From positions 1,178,001 through 1,242,000 of the forward strand of contig OZ251224.1 in assembly GCA_965240325.2 (NCBI GenBank): a stretch of 64,000 nt of DNA, written 5' to 3'. Shown one piece after another: positions 47,365 through 57,830 of the stretch. The DNA comes from Rebecca billardiae RCC1528 (lineage: Eukaryota; Protista; Haptophyta). The notes beneath the pieces are model-generated. The model did not search any database, was not told where the DNA came from, and saw nothing but the letters and a program-made list of their open reading frames with translations. Both the position numbers and the translations under genes were made by a program. Numbering within the stretch: the first letter of the stretch is position 1; the number at the start of each line of letters is the position of its first letter.

Positions 47365-48720
47365 CTACTGCAGCTCTTCCCTTTCGTGCTCGGCAGGCGG
47401 GGCCAGCCGCATGCCGAGCGTGCCCTGCAGCTCGAGCGCGTAACGATCGGCCTCGGCCACGAGCTCGTCGGCGACGCCCTCCCGCCCGAGCAGCGCGAAG
47501 GCGGGCACGTACACCTTCATGTCCTTGCCCTGCTGCACGTTGCGCGCGCGCGCGCTCTCCTGCTCCGCGCGGAAGGGCGCGCTCGAGCGGCGCTCGTCGT
47601 CCTGCTCGTGGCTGAGCGCGCACACGCGCGCGATGTGCGCCGCGGTGGCGTCCGCGTCGTGGCCCGCCTCGACCCACTCGAACGCCGGCTCCTTCCGGAA
47701 CCACTTCATCTGCGCCGCCGCGTACGTGCGGCTCGCCTGCGCGAACGCGTGCACAAAGCGCCACCACGCGGCCGCGTCCCCGGCCGCGTGCTCGGCGCGC
47801 AGCAGGTACTCGATGGCCTGGCGGTAGCCCACGGCGCGGCCGGCGGGGCTGTCCGGCCGCAGCTTGCGCGCGCGCAGCAGCTCGTACGTCTCGCGCAGCA
47901 GCCCGCCGAGCAGCATGCGCTCGCACCGCTCGTCGATCCTGCGGCTGAGCTCGGTCCGGTCCGCGTGCAGGAAGAAGCAGCGCAGCGCACACGCGCCGTG
48001 CACGAGCTCGTGCGGCGCGCGCGTGGGCTTGAGCGCGGAGAGCGGCGCGTTCGTCTGCCGGGCGATCGTGATCGATCGCGCGAGCCGGTACCAGTCGTTC
48101 CGGCTCAGCGACGCCGCGCGCTCCGCGTCCAGCGGCGCCAGCAGCGCGAGGCCAGCGTCCCAGTCTGCCGCTGCCTCGAGAGGCTTCAGCTCCGCACCGA
48201 CCGCCGCGGCGAGGGCCGGGTCGGCGCGCGGCGCCGTGGGCGGGCCGGAGGCGAGCCAGCGCATGTACATTGACGTGCCGCCCACGCAGATCGGCAGCGC
48301 CCCGCGCGCGCAGATCTCGGCGACCGCGTCGCGCGCGCGCGCGTAGAAGTCGCCCGCTGAGAACGGCTCGCGCGGATCGGCGACGTCCAGGAGGTGGTGG
48401 CGCACGGCGAGCTGCTCGGCCGGGCTGGCCTTATTCGAGCCCACGTCGAGCTCGCGGTACACTTGCACGGAGTCCACCGACACGATCTCGCCGCGGAGCT
48501 GCGTGGCGAGTCGGAGCGCGACGGCCGACTTGCCCACGCCGGTCGGGCCGGCGATGAGCACGACGACTGGCCGCGGCGGCGCGGCTGCTGCGGCTGGGCG
48601 GGCGCGCAGAGCTGTGCGAAGGGTCCGGCGGCACGCCGGCGACGAGCACACCGACGCCATCACCGCCGCGCTCGCGAGCGCCGCGGCCGCGAGCGTGGTC
48701 GTCGCCGTGACGTAGTGCAT
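47365..48720 (-). CDS. miaA: tRNA dimethylallyltransferase (MiaA/IPT), organelle-type
   Basis: IAGPTGVGKS, IVSVDSVQVYRELDVGSNK, HHLLDV, VGGTSMY, RAVGYRQ and SRTYAAAQMKWFR, with an N-terminal targeting-like leader. Confidence 0.92.
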   Translation of the reverse strand: MHYVTATTTLAAAALASAAVMASVCSSPACRRTLRTALRARPAAAAAPPRPVVVLIAGPTGVGKSAVALRLATQLRGEIVSVDSVQVYRELDVGSNKASPAEQLAVRHHLLDVADPREPFSAGDFYARARDAVAEICARGALPICVGGTSMYMRWLASGPPTAPRADPALAAAVGAELKPLEAAADWDAGLALLAPLDAERAASLSRNDWYRLARSITIARQTNAPLSALKPTRAPHELVHGACALRCFFLHADRTELSRRIDERCERMLLGGLLRETYELLRARKLRPDSPAGRAVGYRQAIEYLLRAEHAAGDAAAWWRFVHAFAQASRTYAAAQMKWFRKEPAFEWVEAGHDADATAAHIARVCALSHEQDDERRSSAPFRAEQESARARNVQQGKDMKVYVPAFALLGREGVADELVAEADRYALELQGTLGMRLAPPAEHEREELQ

Positions 48721-48885: not shown

Positions 48886-49762
48886 ATGACGTCCACGTTC
48901 ACCAGCTTCGCCGCCCGAGGCCTGGCGAATCGCGACAGCCGCTCGCGCACCGACCCGTTCATCCGCGTCTCCGTCGGCGATCGCTTTGCCGACACCGCGG
49001 AGCTGCGCAACTCGCTCGACCCGACGTGGCCGGAGACCGAGGCCGTGCGGCTGGCGCTGCAGGGCGCGACGTCCGTGCGCGTCGAGGTGTGGGACTACGA
49101 CTGGGCACGCGATGCGTCGGGCGCGCCCGTCGCGGGCGCGCACGACTCGTGCGGCTGGGCCGACGTCGACGTCTCCGAGCCGCAGGGCAGCGGCACGTTT
49201 CCTCTGCAGGGCGGCGCGGCCGGGTCGACGGTCTCGCTCGCGTGGACGACGCCCGAGCAGCCTGGCGGGGAGGCGGAGGAGGCCACGCCCGCACGCCCGC
49301 CGCGCGAGCCCGCCGCGCCGCGCATCGCCACGTTCAACGCCATCTCGGCGCGCAACCTCCCCAACCTCGACGGCCGCTCGCGCACCGACCCGTTTGTGCG
49401 GCTGAGCGCGGGCGCGTCGAGTGCAGACACGTACATGGTGCGCAACACGCTGGACCCGGTGTGGGCGGACGCGGTGAGCCTCGAGATCACCGGCGCGTCC
49501 ACCGTGCGCGTCGAGGTCTTCGACTTCGACTGGGAGCGCGACGCGTCCGGCTCGCTCGCACCGGGCGGGCACGACAGCTGCGGCTGGGCGGAGGTGGACG
49601 TGCGCGGTGAGGCGGGCGGCGGCACACTCGCGCTGCAGGGCGGCGCGGAGGGGAGCAGCATCACGCTCTCGTGGGCGACGTCGGGCGGCGCCGCCTCGGC
49701 GGCAGCCCCGGCGCCCGCGCCCGCGCCCGCGGTGCCTCCGACGCCCGCGCCCGCAGCCGCCC

Positions 49763-49796
<34 letters not shown>

Positions 49797-52679
49797 TGCG
49801 CCTGCGCCCGCGGCTGCGGCTGCGCCCGCCTCCGCGCCGGCCGCGCCCGCAGTCGTCGTGCGCCGAGAGTTTCGAGCGCTCTCGCGGCGCGAGCAGGAGC
49901 GCGTGATCGGCGCGTTCCGCCAGCTGATGCACGCGCCGTCGGGCCCGGGCTCGAGCGAGTACGCGCGCATCGCGCAGCTCCACGCCGACTTCTGCCACCA
50001 CGGGCAGGAGAGCTTCCCCGCGTGGCACCGCGCGTACGCCCTCGAGCTCGAGAGGGCGCTGCAGGCGGCCGACCGCGCGCGCGGCGGCGACGGGCGCGTC
50101 GCGCTGCCGTACTGGGACTGGACGTCGCTGCGCGCGAACGAGGGGATGCCGCGCGCGCTGCGCGACGCGTTCGGCGAGATGCCCGCCGACCTGGTGGACG
50201 CGTCCACGCACGCCCCGCTCGCCGAGCGCGGCTACACGCGCGTGCACGCGGACAGCGCCATCTATCAGCGGCTCGGCGCGGCGCGCGCGGCGCAGCAGGC
50301 GGCGGTGGCGCTGCAGCAGCCGCAGCACTGGCAGCACGCGTCGACGCGCTGGCGCGGCTCCTTCGAGGGCAACTCGGTCGAGGCGCCGCACAACGCGGTG
50401 CACAACGCCGTCGGCTTCCCGATGACGTCCACCCGGTGCGCGCGCCAGCGCACGCCGGCAGACCAGCGCGCGCGAGCCCTGCGCGGCCGCGCACCTGCGC
50501 GCGGCCGCGCGCGCGCGCGCGGCCGCCGGCTGACGCACGGCGCGGCGCGCGCGCGCGCACGCGCGGTGCAGGTACGCCTCGTTCCACCCGATCTTCTTCC
50601 TGCACCACTGCAACGTCGACCGCCAGCACGAGGCGTACCTGCAGCTGCACGGCCGCGCGGAGGTGGAGGCGGAGTACGTGGCCAGCCAGCGCGCGCTCGA
50701 GGCGCGCGGCGAGCCCAACCGGTACGAGGCGCCGCTCGAGCCGTTCGCGCACCCGCGCACGGGCGCGGCGCTCACGCCGGCGGACTGCTTCGACGCGCGC
50801 GGCCTCGGCTTCGAGTACGACGTGCTCCCGCCCGCGCCGCCGCTGCAGCTGCGCGCGCCGCCCGTGCACGCGTGCTTTGACGGCATCGAGCCGCTGCAGC
50901 TCGACTTCAAGTCGTGGCTGCTGCATGTGTTCGTGGCGGACGCGGTCGCGGAGGGCGCGGGCGCGTTTGGCAGCGCGGAGTGGGCGGCGGCGCTCGGGCC
51001 GTCGGCGTGGTTCCGCGACCCGCGGTACGCGGGCTGCGGCGCCGTCTTCGGCGGCAAGGCCACCGAGTGCGCCGGCTGCGCCGAGCGCGAGCCGTACAAC
51101 GTGTGCGTCGACGTGTCCGACGCGATGCGCGCCGCGCGCGTGACGCGCGCGGAGGCACGGCTGGTGGTGCTGTGCGAGGACGAGGTGGGCGGGCTGCGGC
51201 TGCTCGGGGCGGAGGGCGTGGCCGGCGTGCCGCAGCCCGTGCTCCGCGGCCCCGCCTTCGCCGAGCCGCTGCCGGGCGTCGACCACGCCGAGGGCAGCCC
51301 GCCAGCCGCGGACGCGGCCCACGACGAGACCGAGCGCGCGCAGCTCGTGCGGCTGCTGCGCCGCTACGGCCAGCTGGCGGACGGCGCGGCGGAGGAGGCG
51401 GCGGTTGAGGACGAGGCGCTGCGCGCGGCGGTGCGCGCGGCGCAGGCCGCGCTGGGGCTGCCGCAGACCGGCGTGTGCGGCGCCGAGACCAAGGCCGCCC
51501 TCCGCCGCGCGCGCGCCGACGACCTGCGCGACGACGTCGCCGACCGCGCCACGCGCGCGCGCGCCGAGCGGGTCCTGTACCACGTGGGTGCCGTGCCTGC
51601 GAACGTGGCCGCGCGCGCGCTGCTCGACGACGTGGCGGCGGCGCTGCGCGCGTGGGCCGAGCACACGTCGATCCGCTTCGCGCGCACGCTCGACGCCGCC
51701 GCGGCCACGCTGCACATCCGCTGGGTCGACCTCAGCGCCGCCTCCGCCTCCGCCTCCGCCTCGGGCGCGCACGCGCCGCCTCTGGACGGCGTCGGCGGCG
51801 CGCTCGCGCACGCGACCGCCAACGCCATCGAGCTCGACCTGGCGGAGCTGTGGCTCACGAGCGGCCAGCCGGCACCGCGCCCGGCGGGGCCGCGGCCGGG
51901 GTACCGCGTCTTCGAGGTGCTGCTGCACGAGGTGTGCGCGCGCGCGCTCGCACACACGCGGCACACGCGGCCAGGCCCGTGAGTGTGCACGTTGCAACCG
52001 GGCCTGCGCTCTCAGGCAGTGGCTCTCAGGCCGCTCGGCTCATCCTCCCCTCCTGCGCGCGCGCCACGCGTGTCCGGGTGCGCGCGCAGGCGGGCCACGC
52101 GCTCGGGCTGGGCCACTCGTCCGACCCGTCGGCGGTGATGAGCCCGTACTACGTCGAGGGCCGCACCGCTCTCACGCGCGCAGACATCGAGCGCGCGGCA
52201 GCACTGTACGGGCCCCCGGCTTCCAGGGCGGCGGCGGGCAGCGCGGACCTCGACACCAAGCTGGAGGAGGCGGCGCTGCGCGAGCGCTTCGTCGCGGAGC
52301 AGTATGCCGCCGTGGCCCGCGCCCACGCCGGCCGCGTCGAGGTGGCGCACGCGCTCGGCCTCCTGAAGACCATCGCGCCCGTCCTCACCCACCGGATGTC
52401 GGACGCGGTGCGAGCCGCGCGCGCGCGTGCGCGCCTACGCGCGCGCGGTGCGCTGGGCGCGCGGCTGGCGCGCGCACGCTCGGCTGCCCTGACGGCGATG
52501 CCGCGCCCGGCGCGGTGTCCGCCCTCGCTGCCGCCGACCCACAGGCACTGAACGCCCTCGTCCAGGCCACGCTCGGCGCGGCCGCCTCGCCATCCGACAG
52601 CCTGGAGTACGGCGCGCTCGCGAGCTGCTACAACGCGGTCGTCGACCGGTCTCGCCTGGCTGCCTCGGCCCATGCGTGA
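48886..52679 (+). CDS. Multidomain C2-C2-tyrosinase-matrixin (M10 metalloprotease) fusion, 4 exons (48886-50435, 50572-51931, 52090-52407, 52545-52679), ~1120 aa
   Basis: Two C2 domains (TDPF..VWDYD / VFDFD), a Pro-Ala linker, CuA (LHADFCHHG..FPAWHRAY), CuB (PHNAVH..FHPIFFLHHCNVDR), an MMP prodomain-like GLPQTG..ET..AL, and HEAGHALGLGHS.DPSAVM.PYY formed after splicing. Confidence 0.85.
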
Positions 52680-53339
52680 GGTTGCCAGTGCTGCCAGGCT
52701 GGCCTGCACGTGGCCACCGTTGGGCTGGCGCCGCTGGGCTCGTTCACTCGCGACGACGACTCTTCCTGCACGTCGAGCGAAGTGCCAACCGCGCAACCGA
52801 GTTGAGCGCCGCGGTGCCGGGCGCTCGGCCTCTGTCGAGTGTCAGCGGCCGTACAGTAGTCTTTACTCTTTAGTATGTAGTACGCCGAGCGGTCGCAATG
52901 CATGTCAAAGAGTCGTGATGTAGTCCAGCCTAGCATGAGGCGGGCTATCGGTGAACCTGGGCGTACAGTAGGTCTACAACAAGGCCGCCTAGTGGCTACC
53001 GCTAGCCGTAGTCGGTAGTGGATCAATTTCTGGTCAGCCACTTGCGCCGGCATCATGCGGGCCAGTGTCCAGCGCCGCTGGGCGCGAAGGCGTGCGCGCA
53101 TGCCATGTGCTAGACCGTCGAGTCGGCGACCAATGCCGAGGCCCCCGCGCAGCGCTTCGAGCGCGGTGCGTCCGCTCGCGCGGCGCACGTGACGCACATC
53201 CCGCACGCGCCGTGCGCCACTGCGCCCGTCACCGTTGGCCGGACTCCGGAAGCGGGAAGCCCGTTCCTGTGAACTCGCGTCCAGCGTGCCTGCGCGCTTG
53301 CCTCCTCACACCGCAGCTGCCCGGCCTCTACGCCGAAGC

Positions 53340-55455
53340 ATGCCACCACGCGCACGCGGCTCTGGGGGTGGGCGCTCGGGCCGCGGGGGTGGGCGCGCCC
53401 GCCGCCCGCCGCCCGCCCAGCCCCAGGACCCGCTGGGCGTGCTCGCGCCCGTGAACGTGGACAGCCTGCCGCCGGCCGTGCTCGCGCTGTACGCGTGCGA
53501 GTACGACGAGAGGCACTCGGTCAAGACGGTGCTCACGCGCCACGGCCTGCAGCTTGCACTTGACCGCATGCACCTCGTGCAGGGCGAGGACTCGGGCTCG
53601 GTGGGCGGCGACTGGGACGACGACGACGACGACGACGATGAGGAGTCATGGGATTCTGACGACCCGTCGCCGCGGGCCGCCGGCATCATCTTCCCGCCGA
53701 TCCTCGCGTCGCACGTGGGCGACCTGGTGCGCATGGTGGTCGACCGCAACGCGTACGCCGTGCACAGCACCGAGTACGACGACGGTGGCGACCCGATCGG
53801 CTGGGTGCCGCGCACCGCGGCGATCGTGCTCCGCGGCCTCGGCGCGCTGCACGGCGCGCACGAGCTCGCGCTCAGCGACGCGCAGGCGTCGGTGCTCGTG
53901 CGCGCGGTGTGCGCGCGTCCCGTGCACGAGGGCCTCGGCCACATGTCCGAGTTCATCGAGGCCGGCTCCATCAGCCTCGGCTGGAACCTCGCGCGCGCGC
54001 TGCCGTCGGTGCTCGGCGCGGAGCGCGCGCTGCGCGAGCTGGCGGCCTTGCTGCCTGGGCTGCCTGCCTCGGAGGAGGGGCTGCACGCGCGGCTCGGCGT
54101 GGCGGAGGCGCTGGTCGCGCTGGCCGATGAGGTCGAGTGCGCGTCCTCCCCACAGGCCCCGCCACCGCCGCCGCAGCCAGCCGCCGCGGCTCCGGCCGCC
54201 GCTCCGGGCGCGGCCGCCGCCTCCGCGCCCGCCGGCACCATGCGCGCGCGCGCCGTGCAGGCGCTGGTCTGCGACCTCGAGCGGGTGGTGGGCGAGCTGG
54301 TGCGCGCGACGCGGGTGCCGGAGAGCTCGGAGGAGGTGGTGAGCCGCACGCTGTGCAAGTACGGCAGGCGGCTCGTCGAGCTCGCCCTGCTGCCGCCGAG
54401 CGTGCCCCTCGCCGCCACCGCGTGGACCCACACGGCCGTCGGCGCGGCGCACAGCGCGTACAAGCTGGGCCGGCTGGAGCGGCTGATGGCGGGGGTGGGC
54501 GGGCAGAGCCCGGAGGGCCCGAGGCTCCCGTCGCTCGCCGCGCTGCGCTCCGAGCCGGAGGAGGTGCAGGTCCAGGGCTCTGACGAGTCGGACGCGAGCG
54601 AGGACGAGGACGCGCCGGCTCCGCTCGGGGCCGGCGGCGCGGCGGCGCGCGCTCGCGCCGCGCCGCCGCCGCCGCTCAGCGCGCTGGCCGCGCCCGCCGC
54701 GCGCGCGCTGGCGGCGCGGCGCTGGGCGGTGCCGCTCGCCACGCGCGAGCGCGCCGCCGCCGCCCTGCTCGCCGCCGCGCGCGCCTCGCGCCTCTCGGCG
54801 CTGCCGTCGGGCGGCGTGCTCGACCTGCTCGAGCAGCTCGGCGTCTCCCCGGATCCCCTCGATCCAGGAGTCCGGGACTTTGGCGCCAACGTGAGCGCGC
54901 TCACACTCGGGCGCATGAGCTCGGAGGAGGAGTCGGGGGAGGCGTGGCGCGCGGAGTGCGTGCGCCACCTCGCGCGCGTGCGCGCGCTCCGCCTCGACGC
55001 GTGGGCGCGCGAGGTCGACCAGCAGGCGGACGCCGAGCTCGCGCGCCGACCCGCGCCGAGCGCGCGGCCGTCGGCGCCGCCCGGCGCGAGCGCCGGCGCG
55101 CAGGGCGCGGCCGCGGCGATGGCGGAGGACCGCGAGTACGCCGCGGCGCGCGGCGCGCTCCTCTCCGCGCGCGCGCCCGCCGAGCCCGCGCTCAGCGCCG
55201 CCGACGAGACGCTCGCCGTGCTGCGGCTGCTGCTCCCGTACCGCAAGCTCGTGCCGGGACTTTCCGCGAAACTTCCGCGCGCGGCGCGCGGCGGCGGCGC
55301 GCCGCCTGCCTTCGCGCAGATCCAGACGAACGCCGAGGAGCTGATGGAGTTCTTGCGCGAGGGGCTGGAGCGGCTGCGCGCGGGTGACCGCGCGCTGCAC
55401 CGGCACACGGCCGAGTACGCCGCCCCCTCCGTGCTGCAAGAGTCGTTCGAAGCGC

Positions 55456-55502
<47 letters not shown>

Positions 55503-56343
55503 CCCGCGGTCGTCGGGCCGGGCGGCCCGGTGCCCGACCCGGGCGCGCTGCCCACGCGCGTGCTCGACTGCATCTGCATGGAGCTGCTCAGCAACCTCGT
55601 CCACAGCGGCGGGCGCGCGCGCGCGGTGCTCGCCCACGCCGAGTGCATGCGCGCGCTGCTCGCGCTCGGCGCGGGCCGCATGGGCGCTGGCGACGCGGCG
55701 GGCGGCGCGGGCGGCGCGGCCGACGGCAACGGCGCGGCCGGCGGCGGCGGCTCCGACGGTGCCGAGGAGCCCTCGGCCGGCGTCGGCGTGTGGACGGCGC
55801 GCGCGCTCCTCGAGGAGCGGCGCGTGCTCTACTTCCTCGGCGCGCTCAGCCACGGCCTCGCCACCGCCGAGCGCAGCGGCATCAAGGAGGAAGGTTGGAC
55901 GCTGCCGCCCGCGTCGGCGGACGCGCGCGCCGCGCCCGCGCTCGTGGAAGTGACGCTGCCGAGGATCAAGGGGGCGCTGCGCGCGGCGGGGCGCGCGTAC
56001 GAGGCCGCGCCGAGCGGCGCGCGCGGCGCGGGGCAGCGCGCGTGCGCCTCGCTCCTCGTGCGCGAGGCGGTCGGCGTGGCGTCCAACATGCGCGTGCTGT
56101 CCACAGCCACACTCTCACGGCTCGCGGGCTCGGAGGTGTGGGGCGCGGCGGTGGCGTTGCTCCGCGCGCCGCGCACGCCACACCCGGCGCGCTCGGCCGT
56201 GCTCAAGTTCTGCGTCGACCTGTGCCAGTGGAGCTTCCCGCCCGCCGACTCGTCCTTCAGCGCCAACACGCAGGTGGGCGCGCGGCTGCTGCGCAGCGGA
56301 CTCGTCCCGCTGTGCACCGAGCGCGCGATGCTCGCCGTCCCGA

Positions 56344-56374
<31 letters not shown>

Positions 56375-57830
56375 GGGCGCGGACGGCGGGGACGGCGGCG
56401 GCGGCGCGGACGCGGACGCCGAGGCGCCGCCCGCCGAGTGGCTCGGCCTCGCCGGGTACGCGGTGGGCCTGGGCGACTACGCCGAGCACGCCACGCGCAG
56501 GCTCGCCGGCCGGCGCGGCGACGGCCCGCGCGTCTCCGCTGTGCCCGACCGGCCGAGCGCCGCCGCCGCCGAGGCGGAGGGCGCGCGCGAGCGCGCGTAC
56601 CAGCGCGCCGCGGCCGCGTCGGCGCGCAGCGAGGGCGTCGTGGCGCTGCGCTGCCTCGGCATCCTCACGCGGATGGACGACGCGCGCGAGCTGATGGCCG
56701 ACGCGGACGACGCGGCGGGCGAGCCCGGCTGCTCCCTCCTGCGCCACGTCGAGCGGCTGTGCGGCTGCGCGCGCGGCGAGGGCGCGGCCTCGCTCGCGCC
56801 AGAGGTCGAGGCTTGGGTGAATGAGGCGCTCTTCGCCGTGCTGCACCTCGCGTGGAGCCCGCGCTGGCGCGCGCGGTTCGCGGCGGCGCACGCGCAGCCG
56901 ACGCTCGCGCGCATCGCGTGCCGCTTCGCGCGCCGGCTCTGGGCCACGCACCCGTTCACGCTCGCGCACGCGCGCACGGCCGACCTCGCTTCGCGCCCGC
57001 CGGCGCTGCGCCGCGTGCGGCAGATTGCAGGCGTGCCCACGTCGCGTGGGCTGCGCGCGCTCGCGCGCGCGGTCGCGACGAGCGGCTGCCTGCTGTACGA
57101 GGAGGAGCACTTTGCGCCACTGATCGGGGACGGGCTGTGGCGCGAGCTCGTCGGCATCGCACTCGAGCTCCCGTGGTTTGAGGTGCAGAAGTTCGCCACG
57201 CTCGCGATCGGCAACATCTGCCTCGCGCCGCGCGGCGCCGGCCGCGGCCCGCCGCCGTGCCAGCAGCTGCGCAGCCTGCTCACCGAGCCGCAGGCGGTGG
57301 CGATGGTGCGCGCGCTGCTGGACAACCTCTACTACGAGACGCAGGACTACAGGGGCGAGGCCCTCGAGGAGCGCATGCGCAAGGAGATGGCGCAGCCCAC
57401 CCTGCGCACGCTGCCCATCCTGCACGGCGAGGCGGGCTGGTCGGGCGCGCTCCGCGCCGCCGCCGCGTGCCACGGCGACGAGAGCGTGCACGGCTCGCGC
57501 GAGTGGCTGCTCGAGAACATGGTGGCGACGCTGCCCTCGCCGAGCGCGGGCACGGGCGCGTCGGTCGTCCCGCGCACCGCCGCCGACTTTGCCGCCGCCG
57601 CGCCCGGCCGCGACGCGCTCGCGCGCCGGTGCGCGCACTGCGCCAAGCGCGAGCCGCAGCGCGGCGTCTTCAAGGTGTGCAGCGCGTGCCGCAGCGCGGG
57701 CGTCGAGACGCTCTACTGCGACAAGGAGTGCGCCAAGGCGGACTGGAAGGGCGGCGGGCACAAGAAGGTCTGCGGCGGCCGCGCCGCCGCGCCGCCGCCA
57801 GGCGCCGGTGCCGGCACGCCGCGCTCGTGA
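53340..57830 (+). CDS. Large alpha-helical (ARM-like) protein with a C-terminal MYND zinc finger
   Basis: CAHCAK..FKVCSACRS..YCDKECAKADWK..HKKVC. The first ATG is at 53340. Confidence 0.8.

Follow-up and report, generated by a model that had tools for sequence, protein, structure and literature searches.

We analysed a 64,000-nt stretch of DNA from the haptophyte Rebecca billardiae RCC1528 (contig OZ251224.1, positions 1,178,001 to 1,242,000), hereafter called the window. A gene at 48886-52679 on the forward strand of the window is predicted to encode a protein of 1120 aa, which consists of two C2 domains, a type-3 copper tyrosinase, a beta-sandwich lid, a matrix metalloprotease (MMP)-type prodomain, a matrixin and a tail of ~105 aa, in this order. 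Every domain is known, and members of the family to which the protein belongs are public under generic names. The known domains are combined in a variant form, namely a latent tyrosinase with a built-in candidate activator and interchangeable membrane and Ca2+ modules. A literature search found no paper describing a tyrosinase-matrixin or C2-tyrosinase fusion, although this does not prove that none exists. In at least 98 sequence clusters, which come from choanoflagellates, dinoflagellates, green algae and haptophytes, latent oxidase and pro-protease are permanently linked. In fungi and plants, latent tyrosinases become active when a C-terminal lid is removed, and the protease that does this has not been identified (PMC4157443). 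The family described here may explain how such oxidases are switched on. As the best explanation overall, we propose a Ca2+-recruited double zymogen whose protease releases the oxidase, and we hold this proposal with slightly less than even confidence.

Gene structure of the fusion

When the four exons were joined in silico, a 3363-nt frame of 1120 codons plus a stop codon was obtained. All three introns have the form GT...AG, and the local G+C content around the gene is 73-78%. The exons and introns are as follows (positions are those of the window; CuA and CuB, copper-binding sites A and B; ORF, open reading frame; P0001, L001 and L002 are described below).

48886-50435, +, exon 1: start codon, first and second C2 domains, Ala/Pro-rich linker and most of the tyrosinase core, with CuA and the first two CuB His (ORF and translation; Pfam)
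50436-50571, +, intron 1: 136 nt, GT..AG, phase 2 (Pfam Tyrosinase spans the join; P0001 is continuous; L002 has indels only here)
50572-51931, +, exon 2: third CuB helix, core-lid linker, lid and prodomain, then the matrixin up to ..LLHE (its first two thirds)
51932-52089, +, intron 2: 158 nt, GT..AG, phase 0, splitting HE|AGH (Peptidase_M10 6-115, then 117-159; L001 has an intron at the same site; transcript homologues are continuous)
52090-52407, +, exon 3: AGHALGLGH and Met-turn; the matrixin ends and the C-terminal tail begins here
52408-52544, +, intron 3: 137 nt, GT..AG (matching intron in L001; the two exon 4 peptides, each of 44 aa, show weak similarity)
52545-52679, +, exon 4 and stop codon

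The joins were checked against domain profiles. Exon 1 matches positions 3-186 of the Pfam Tyrosinase profile and exon 2 matches positions 190-212, so that this profile continues across intron 1. Likewise, the Peptidase_M10 profile continues across intron 2, its positions 6-115 being matched by exon 2 and 117-159 by exon 3. The zinc motif of the protease, HE|AGHALGLGH, is formed only once intron 2 has been spliced out. Both C2 domains are joined to the tyrosinase within exon 1 alone, and exon 2 alone is free of stop codons from the last copper helix via the lid and the prodomain into the matrixin. Because exons 1 and 2 each bridge domains without a stop, the fusion is independent of any single intron call. 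A 55%-identical gene on a JGI metagenome contig (P0001/L001), which has one C2 domain, does not possess an intron at the intron 1 site, and its frame bears out the join of exons 1 and 2 at the level of single residues. Its introns are at the exact positions of introns 2 and 3. In addition, a 1970-nt contig of a public assembly (L002; Logan, run ERR14847151) is a copy of positions 49773-51764 with 98-99% identity and, as judged from its sequence, comes from the same or a sister strain. In the exon parts, L002 differs from the window by 2 substitutions in 663 nt and 4 in 1193 nt (0.3%) and has no indels. All of its indels (+10 nt and -32 nt, the net being not a multiple of three) are in intron 1. 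This pattern is as expected for a noncoding intron between constrained exons and therefore supports intron 1. The complete ORFs of transcript-derived homologues are unbroken across all three intron sites.

Intron 3 is the least supported of the three introns, since it was placed with the single homologue L001. This weak point could be cited in favour of a gene-model artefact, in which adjacent tyrosinase and protease genes have been joined by imagined introns. However, the stop-free frame of exon 2 already takes in the last copper helix, the lid, the prodomain and part of the matrixin, P0001 is one uninterrupted ORF from the C2 domain through the matrixin, and complete transcript-derived ORFs have the same domain order. 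We regard an artefact as scarcely credible. The analysis confirms one nuclear gene that encodes a true fusion, with the splicing read from the sequence alone. A preliminary description of this DNA had proposed that the removal of three GT-AG introns leaves one frame of ~1120 aa and that the zinc motif forms only on splicing. The in-frame join, the continuity of the Pfam profiles, introns 2 and 3 of L001 and the indels of L002 in intron 1 bear out this proposal.

Oxidase, lid and protease domains

When the exons were submitted separately, Pfam recovered every domain named in the preliminary description (C2 twice, Tyrosinase, PG_binding_1 and Peptidase_M10). The predicted protein is divided as follows (HMM, hidden Markov model; E, expectation value; pLDDT, predicted local distance difference test score; the P0007 model is described below).

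48886-49251, +, C2 domain 1: residues 1-122; D17, D23, D70, D72, D88 (family HMM, E 3.5e-21; Asp columns)
49321-49671, +, C2 domain 2: residues ~146-262; D162, D168, D213, D215, D230 (Pfam best stretch 149-240; Asp columns)
49672-49860, +, Ala/Pro-rich low-complexity linker: residues 263-325 (equivalent stretch has pLDDT <50 in the P0007 model)
49861-50824, +, tyrosinase core: residues 326-601, spanning intron 1; six Cu-ligand His, Cys370, closing F-E-Y (family HMM, E 3.8e-107; Pfam; PDB matches)
50825-50866, +, core-lid linker VLPPAPPLQLRAPP: motif P-x-Q-[LM]-R-E/A-x-P; candidate maturation site (motif conservation)
50867-51241, +, beta-sandwich lid: residues 616-740; F676-G-G, C683-x-x-C686 (family HMM, E 2.5e-32; structure matches)
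51329-51535, +, MMP-type prodomain (PG_binding_1 fold): ends RRARADDLRDD, with R-A-D in place of PRCGxPD (Pfam; proMMP-9 on model residues 253-453; profile against proMMP-1)
51569-52221, +, matrixin catalytic domain: spanning intron 2; HEAGHALGLGH, Met-turn AVMSPYY, DG.GG / D..E calcium site (Pfam; MMP-12 and MMP-9 structure matches)
52222-52676, +, C-terminal tail: ~105 aa, spanning intron 3, helical, otherwise present only in L001

In the tyrosinase, all six type-3 copper ligands are intact, with H366, H372 and H381 at CuA and H502, H506 and H528/H529 at CuB (key columns HCHHHHHH). Cys370 is located two residues ahead of the second CuA His, where fungal tyrosinases and mollusc hemocyanins have the Cys of their Cys-His thioether. 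F-E-Y at residues 597-599 closes the core. Pfam finds Tyrosinase (PF00264) with an E value of 4.6e-18, plus the remainder in exon 2, and the PDB sequence matches of the core are mollusc hemocyanin units and tyrosinases.

We used two structure models to assign the domain that follows the core. One is of P0007, a complete transcript-derived homologue of 872 aa from Savillea parva (105-row alignment; mean pLDDT 87.5, predicted template modelling score 0.81), and the other is of exon 2 of the window (pLDDT 86.3). The Octopus hemocyanin unit 1js8_A aligns to residues 165-584 of the P0007 model (Z 32.5, root-mean-square deviation (rmsd) 3.3 Å, 345 of 382 residues), and Burkholderia BtTYR, abPPO4 and A. 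oryzae MelB with their C-terminal domains reach similar ranges. In contrast, lid-less active tyrosinases end at residues 448-453. From this difference in extent (residue 584 against 448-453), we identify the extra domain as a shielding domain that is canonical both in type and in position. The exon 2 model has the same seven-strand pattern and matches the hemocyanin unit 8tnv_A (E 4e-4 over 266 columns). Thus, this structure prediction upholds the view of the preliminary description that the domain after the tyrosinase is positioned like a lid.

The most conserved stretch of the lid is Y-A-G-x4-F-G-G-K-G-x2-C-x-N-C, in which one Gly is invariant in 54 sequences. Its FGG loop aligns under the Y-A-G-...-L-G-G loop of a multi-unit hemocyanin. 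The commonest lid pattern is FGGCC, which is present in 42 family members; where copper ligands have been lost, this pattern decays as well. In abPPO4, the placeholder residue Phe454 is followed by a conserved CxxC (C462-x-x-C465), which has been implicated in copper insertion (PMC4157443). The spacing of the lid Phe and CxxC in the fusion protein (+7/+10: F676, C683 and C686) resembles that in abPPO4, and F676 may be the placeholder residue over the copper site.

The oxidase half therefore has two sets of known relatives. Like the fungal pro-tyrosinases (Agaricus bisporus abPPO4 and Aspergillus oryzae MelB), which are cytosolic, it has no signal peptide, and it shares with them Cys-x-His at CuA, a seven-strand beta domain after the core, a Phe that may cover the site and a CxxC a few residues further on. 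The fungal enzymes are activated by proteolytic removal of the lid; in the fusion protein, lid cleavage is a proposal. The activating protease of the fungal enzymes is separate, and that of the abPPO4-type latent tyrosinase has been described as of still unknown origin and type (PMC4157443), whereas the fusion protein has a pro-matrixin in the same chain and C2 domains ahead of the oxidase. For core and lid taken together, the closest matches in both sequence and structure are the mollusc hemocyanin units (Octopus Odg, 1js8), and the YAG...[F/L]GG loops align. However, hemocyanins carry oxygen as secreted multi-unit proteins, have Leu at the aligned position and lack a protease, whereas the fusion protein has one unit only, Phe at this position and a protease in the same chain.

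The protease part is predicted to be a pro-matrixin without a cysteine switch. Pfam finds PG_binding_1 with an E value of 3.8e-9 and Peptidase_M10 (PF00413) with 29.2 + 37.6 bits across intron 2. The prodomain and catalytic domain of proMMP-9 align to residues 253-453 of the exon 2 model, and the catalytic domains of MMP-12 and MMP-9 align to residues 325-453 (Z ~12, rmsd 2.0 Å, 102 residues). Furthermore, a profile of the C-terminal half of the family matches proMMP-1 over the prodomain and the catalytic domain (E 1.6e-37). A complete HExxHxxGxxH motif is found at residues 969-979 (HEAGHALGLGH), together with the Met-turn AVMSPYY, and both are nearly invariant across the family. The structural calcium site is kept (LDGVGGALAHA and ELDLAELW); in the family, G173, G174 and E190 are nearly invariant and D187 is invariant. 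The structural zinc site of MMP-1, which we take to be His168, Asp170, His183 and His196, is not conserved in the family consensus. The position of His196 aligns with a non-His residue, and the window protein keeps only some of the His residues.

In the alignment of the switch region, the family sequence k-k-r-f-D lies under Q-P-R-C-gvp-D of proMMP-1, so that the family has retained the Arg and the last Asp but has lost G-V-P. The position of the switch Cys is occupied by Ala in the window protein, by Pro in L001 and mostly by Phe, Tyr or Met elsewhere, and most members have no Cys there. The Asp that follows the Arg is nearly invariant in the family. Compared with proMMP-1, -3, -9 and -10, the fusion protein shares the three-helix PG_binding_1-type prodomain, the catalytic domain, HExxHxxGxxH, the Met-turn and the calcium site, but does not possess a cysteine switch, conserved structural-zinc His residues, a signal peptide or a hemopexin domain. 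In aspartate-switch metzincins, for example astacins, fragilysin-3 and the bacterial MMP karilysin, an Asp of the prosegment, not a Cys, blocks the catalytic zinc (PMC9629494). By analogy with these zymogens (astacin, meprin beta, fragilysin-3 and karilysin), it is a reasonable idea that the near-invariant Asp after the Arg of the former switch could act as an aspartate switch. However, the prosegment of karilysin is a short peptide and not a PG_binding_1 domain.

Both C2 domains are predicted to be of the Ca2+-binding type. Pfam finds C2 (PF00168) in two stretches with an E value of 4.8e-24, and the five canonical Ca2+-ligand Asp positions are all kept in each domain. The best PDB sequence matches are myoferlin (E 1.6e-11), dysferlin and synaptotagmin-1. 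The canonical five-Asp set is common to the ferlins, the synaptotagmins and the fusion protein. In contrast, ferlins and synaptotagmins act in vesicle fusion and membrane repair and are not enzymes, and loop 3 of the C2 domains of the fusion protein has an insertion of ~10 residues. The N-terminus begins in strand 1 of the first C2 domain without a hydrophobic leader, as judged by a hydropathy heuristic. The preliminary description had reported two C2 domains with their Asp residues, all six copper-ligand His, an MMP prodomain-like segment, a complete zinc motif with a Met-turn, no signal peptide and the replacement of PRCGxPD. Each of these features has been located here, the prodomain through PG_binding_1 and the alignments to proMMP-9 and proMMP-1, and the replaced switch as R-A-D, which corresponds to R-x-D family-wide.

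Constant core and variable ends of the family

In a first word-based protein search, only one true relative was obtained, and the Ala/Pro-rich linker drew unrelated acetyltransferases; the (Ala-Pro)n stretch at 49705-49809 draws spurious word matches to bacterial lipoyl-domain acetyltransferases. An ESM Atlas feature search with P0007 gave no usable match. An exhaustive search over 1.84 billion cluster representatives gave 130 matches below 1e-30, dozens of which run as a single stretch from the tyrosinase start to the matrixin end of the query. All 54 aligned matches contain Tyrosinase and PG_binding_1; Peptidase_M10 is present in 53 and C2 in 15. When the best 150 representatives were examined with family HMMs, 98 were found to have tyrosinase plus matrixin, and 97 of these 98 also have the lid. 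C2 was found in 25 of the 150, and most of the remaining matches are short fragments.

Members were found in the choanoflagellates Savillea parva (P0007) and Didymoeca costata (P0042), the dinoflagellates Gymnodinium smaydae, Polykrikos kofoidii and Durusdinium trenchii, the green alga Ostreobium quekettii and the haptophyte Scyphosphaera apsteinii. Several are transcript ORFs labelled 'type:complete'. The deposited names are generic ('Tyrosinase copper-binding domain-containing protein', 'Hemocyanin G-type'), and some members are unnamed. A survey in 2013 found no type-3 copper proteins in the genome of the choanoflagellate Monosiga (PMC3658974); by transcriptomes, the present family places type-3 copper proteins in choanoflagellates. 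The preliminary description had implied that the architecture is unique. This idea has to be abandoned, because the architecture search showed that the tyrosinase-matrixin core is widespread and that the order C2, tyrosinase, matrixin occurs in choanoflagellate and dinoflagellate transcripts. The two-C2 form in the window is an unremarkable member of the family.

As predicted from the domain assignments, the tyrosinase-lid-prodomain-matrixin core is constant, and the variable ends are membrane-targeting or Ca2+-sensing devices. The C2 domains of the family mostly keep the ligand Asp residues. C2-bearing members do not form one clade in a quick tree, in which the labels come from a crude motif and the branch support is weak. 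Of 142 matches with an initial Met, Gly is the second residue in 30, and a myristoylation-like pattern is seen in 25, in which Cys is often the third residue. C2 is present in 17 and a myristoylation-like start in 11 of the 68 members whose N-terminal boundary is complete. At the C termini, P0007 ends in CTLL, P0010 in CALL and P0013 in CAIL, with a Lys-rich stretch before the box in P0007 and P0013, and other members end in further CaaX-like boxes. Bona fide C-terminal EF-hand pairs are present in at least three members (P0017, P0062 and P0109), and one member has a Dpy-30 domain. P0055 is also among the members listed for differing C-terminal add-ons (EF-hand pairs, Dpy-30 docking domain and CaaX boxes). 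The C-terminal tail of the window protein gave no Pfam match. It aligns loosely to the true EF-hand tails of P0017, P0062 and P0109, and was not accepted as an EF-hand pair, since the acidic loop residues are absent; it may be a degenerate EF-hand pair.

These add-ons hint when and where the protein acts, and they suggest that the family members sit at the cytosolic face of membranes. Because C2 domains, myristoylation-like N-termini, CaaX boxes and EF-hands recur, the case for an intracellular site is stronger than the mere absence of a signal peptide would make it. Among these devices, C2 and EF-hand are Ca2+ sensors of two distinct types. The intracellular, membrane-associated location put forward in the preliminary description fits this family-wide pattern. 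Matrixins are normally secreted, many tyrosinases are extracellular too, and leader-like hydrophobic N-termini were found by the hydropathy heuristic in two members (P0026 and P0084). The fusion protein could, from these facts, act outside the cell, by an unconventional route or through an unannotated upstream exon that encodes a signal peptide. However, only 165 bp separate its start codon from a divergent tRNA isopentenyltransferase (IPPT) gene, the close homologue also begins directly in C2, and C2, myristoylation motifs, CaaX, EF-hands and Dpy-30 are all cytosolic devices. Extracellular action is thus quite improbable. The family would then provide matrixins that are inside cells and have no cysteine switch.

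Active sites, proposed release of the oxidase and neighbouring genes

To compare the states of the two active sites, 66 members in which all key columns are present were tabulated as follows.

Copper site intact, zinc site intact: 49 members
Copper site lost, zinc site lost: 10 members
Copper site intact, zinc site lost: 5 members
Copper site lost, zinc site intact: 2 members

Members that have lost the copper site tend to have lost the zinc site too, with a raw Fisher p of 8e-7 that does not allow for the members being related and sharing states by kinship. This result suggests that the two sites tend to be kept or lost together, which argues for one pathway. The coupling fits lid cleavage and a shared substrate alike. 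P0026, P0032, P0035, P0086 and P0109 are among the members in which both sites are dead. These half-dead and fully dead enzyme pairs are a natural series for studying the coupling of the two activities. As a separate observation, about a quarter of the family has lost the catalytic Glu or a His of the matrixin, and most of those members have also lost copper ligands and the F/CxxC motif of the lid.

The persistence of 10 of the 66 members with both sites lost could be explained if the protease were the effector and the tyrosinase-lid part a regulatory or oxygen/redox sensor like a hemocyanin unit, or if the whole protein were mainly a scaffold. The closest solved relatives of the oxidase part, which are mollusc hemocyanin units with permanently closed lids, would agree with this. 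However, the window protein and 49 of the 66 members keep the six Cu ligands, the Cys-x-His pair and the zinc site, and the lid carries Phe as in latent tyrosinases, not the Leu of the aligned hemocyanin. Therefore, we consider a sensor or scaffold improbable.

The release of the oxidase by its own protease would proceed as follows. The double zymogen would sit on, or be recruited to, the cytosolic face of a membrane. If Ca2+ rose, for example because a damaged cell took in seawater, the C2 domains would be driven onto the membrane, and the structural calcium site of the matrixin would be filled. The matrixin would then cut the core-lid linker, in its own chain or in neighbouring chains. The lid with its Phe would be removed and phenoloxidase activity released, and the quinones formed would serve cross-linking or defence. 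The parts of this proposal differ in strength. By analogy with latent tyrosinases, the protease may open the lid, and we place this step just below an even chance. The role of Ca2+ as the trigger is more tentative, and a role in wounding or defence is doubtful. The preliminary description had put forward such a Ca2+-triggered wound or defence module, an interpretation that the present analysis supports in part.

If the lid is cut off, the core-lid linker is the first site to consider. Between a closing Y-x-Y-D motif and the first lid strand, many members have L-P-x-x-P-x-Q-[LM]-R-E-x-P in common, and the window protein has PPLQLRAPP. Pro at P3 and Leu or Met at P1' resemble the cleavage preferences of matrixins. 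We tried to recognise the linker as an MMP site on this basis, and this attempt failed: the motif is conserved, but the generic pattern P-x-x-[LMI] is not enriched in the linkers over composition-matched shuffles (25 of 45 against 23.2 +/- 3.3), and the site remains a lead only. This result counts against release of the oxidase by its own protease, and so do several others. The linker is ordered in the P0007 model (pLDDT >90). The prodomain has no switch Cys, so the latency of the protease needs some other means. C2 occurs in about one sixth of the matches; therefore, Ca2+ control through C2 can be at most a feature of a sub-family. A test on phylogenetically independent pairs points to coupling but is underpowered: among ~8 pairs that differ in one trait, the second trait changed in the same direction in 4.9 on average and in the opposite direction in none (median p 0.06). 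Finally, 5 of the 66 members (P0018, P0025, P0095, P0116 and P0138) keep all six Cu-ligand His although their protease is dead, so that self-activation in cis cannot be universal. Activation in trans by active paralogues is possible, and dinoflagellates hold both kinds.

Some of the same facts can be accounted for by a tandem action on a third-party substrate. The matrixin would trim a membrane protein or peptide, and the tyrosinase would oxidise its tyrosines or a small phenol, for cross-linking, a repair plug, a cell covering or the maturation of a peptide natural product. The lid would be opened otherwise or would serve mainly in copper loading. The five copper-intact, protease-dead members are compatible with this. 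The correlated decay shows that the sites are coupled, which is not the same as activation of one by the other. The lid has retained its CxxC, a motif associated with copper insertion in the fungal enzymes, and the linker motif is not MMP-like beyond its amino-acid composition. On the other hand, no candidate substrate gene is evident beside the fusion gene. Moreover, the Phe lid, which is kept in 97 of 98 fusions, implies a gated oxidase, and the fused protease is the nearest candidate for its opener. We regard tandem action as unlikely, although it is a serious alternative.

In its broadest form, release of the oxidase by the fused protease would mean that many marine protists hold a one-protein, cytosolic, injury-armed phenoloxidase. 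A lid-capped tyrosinase with its own protease would be silent at resting Ca2+, fired by the Ca2+ of seawater and concentrated on the membrane by C2 domains, EF-hands or lipid anchors. This generalisation is speculative, and we think it rather unlikely to hold in full. If it is true, the family would have evolved, independently and in compact form, a counterpart to the prophenoloxidase cascade of arthropods. It would provide the first natural example of an identified activating protease for a latent tyrosinase, and it would be a source of unrecognised wound-activated chemistry in bloom-forming and coral-symbiotic algae. The likeness to the arthropod cascade is a functional analogy only: in both, a leaderless latent type-3 copper oxidase would be unlocked by limited proteolysis after injury. 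In contrast to the fusion protein, which has a metalloprotease and is predicted to be intracellular, the arthropod cascade uses separate clip-domain serine proteases in haemolymph and a copper protein of the beta subclass.

The IPPT gene (47365-48720, -) is arranged head-to-head with the fusion gene, with 165 bp between the start codons, and the two genes likely share a bidirectional promoter. The best named matches of IPPT are from the pavlovophyte haptophytes Pavlovales sp. CCMP2436 and Diacronema lutheri, with 55-56% identity. Directly downstream of the fusion gene, an open frame of 1531 aa (53235-57830, +) contains Ala/Gly/Asp runs and has a MYND zinc finger at its end.

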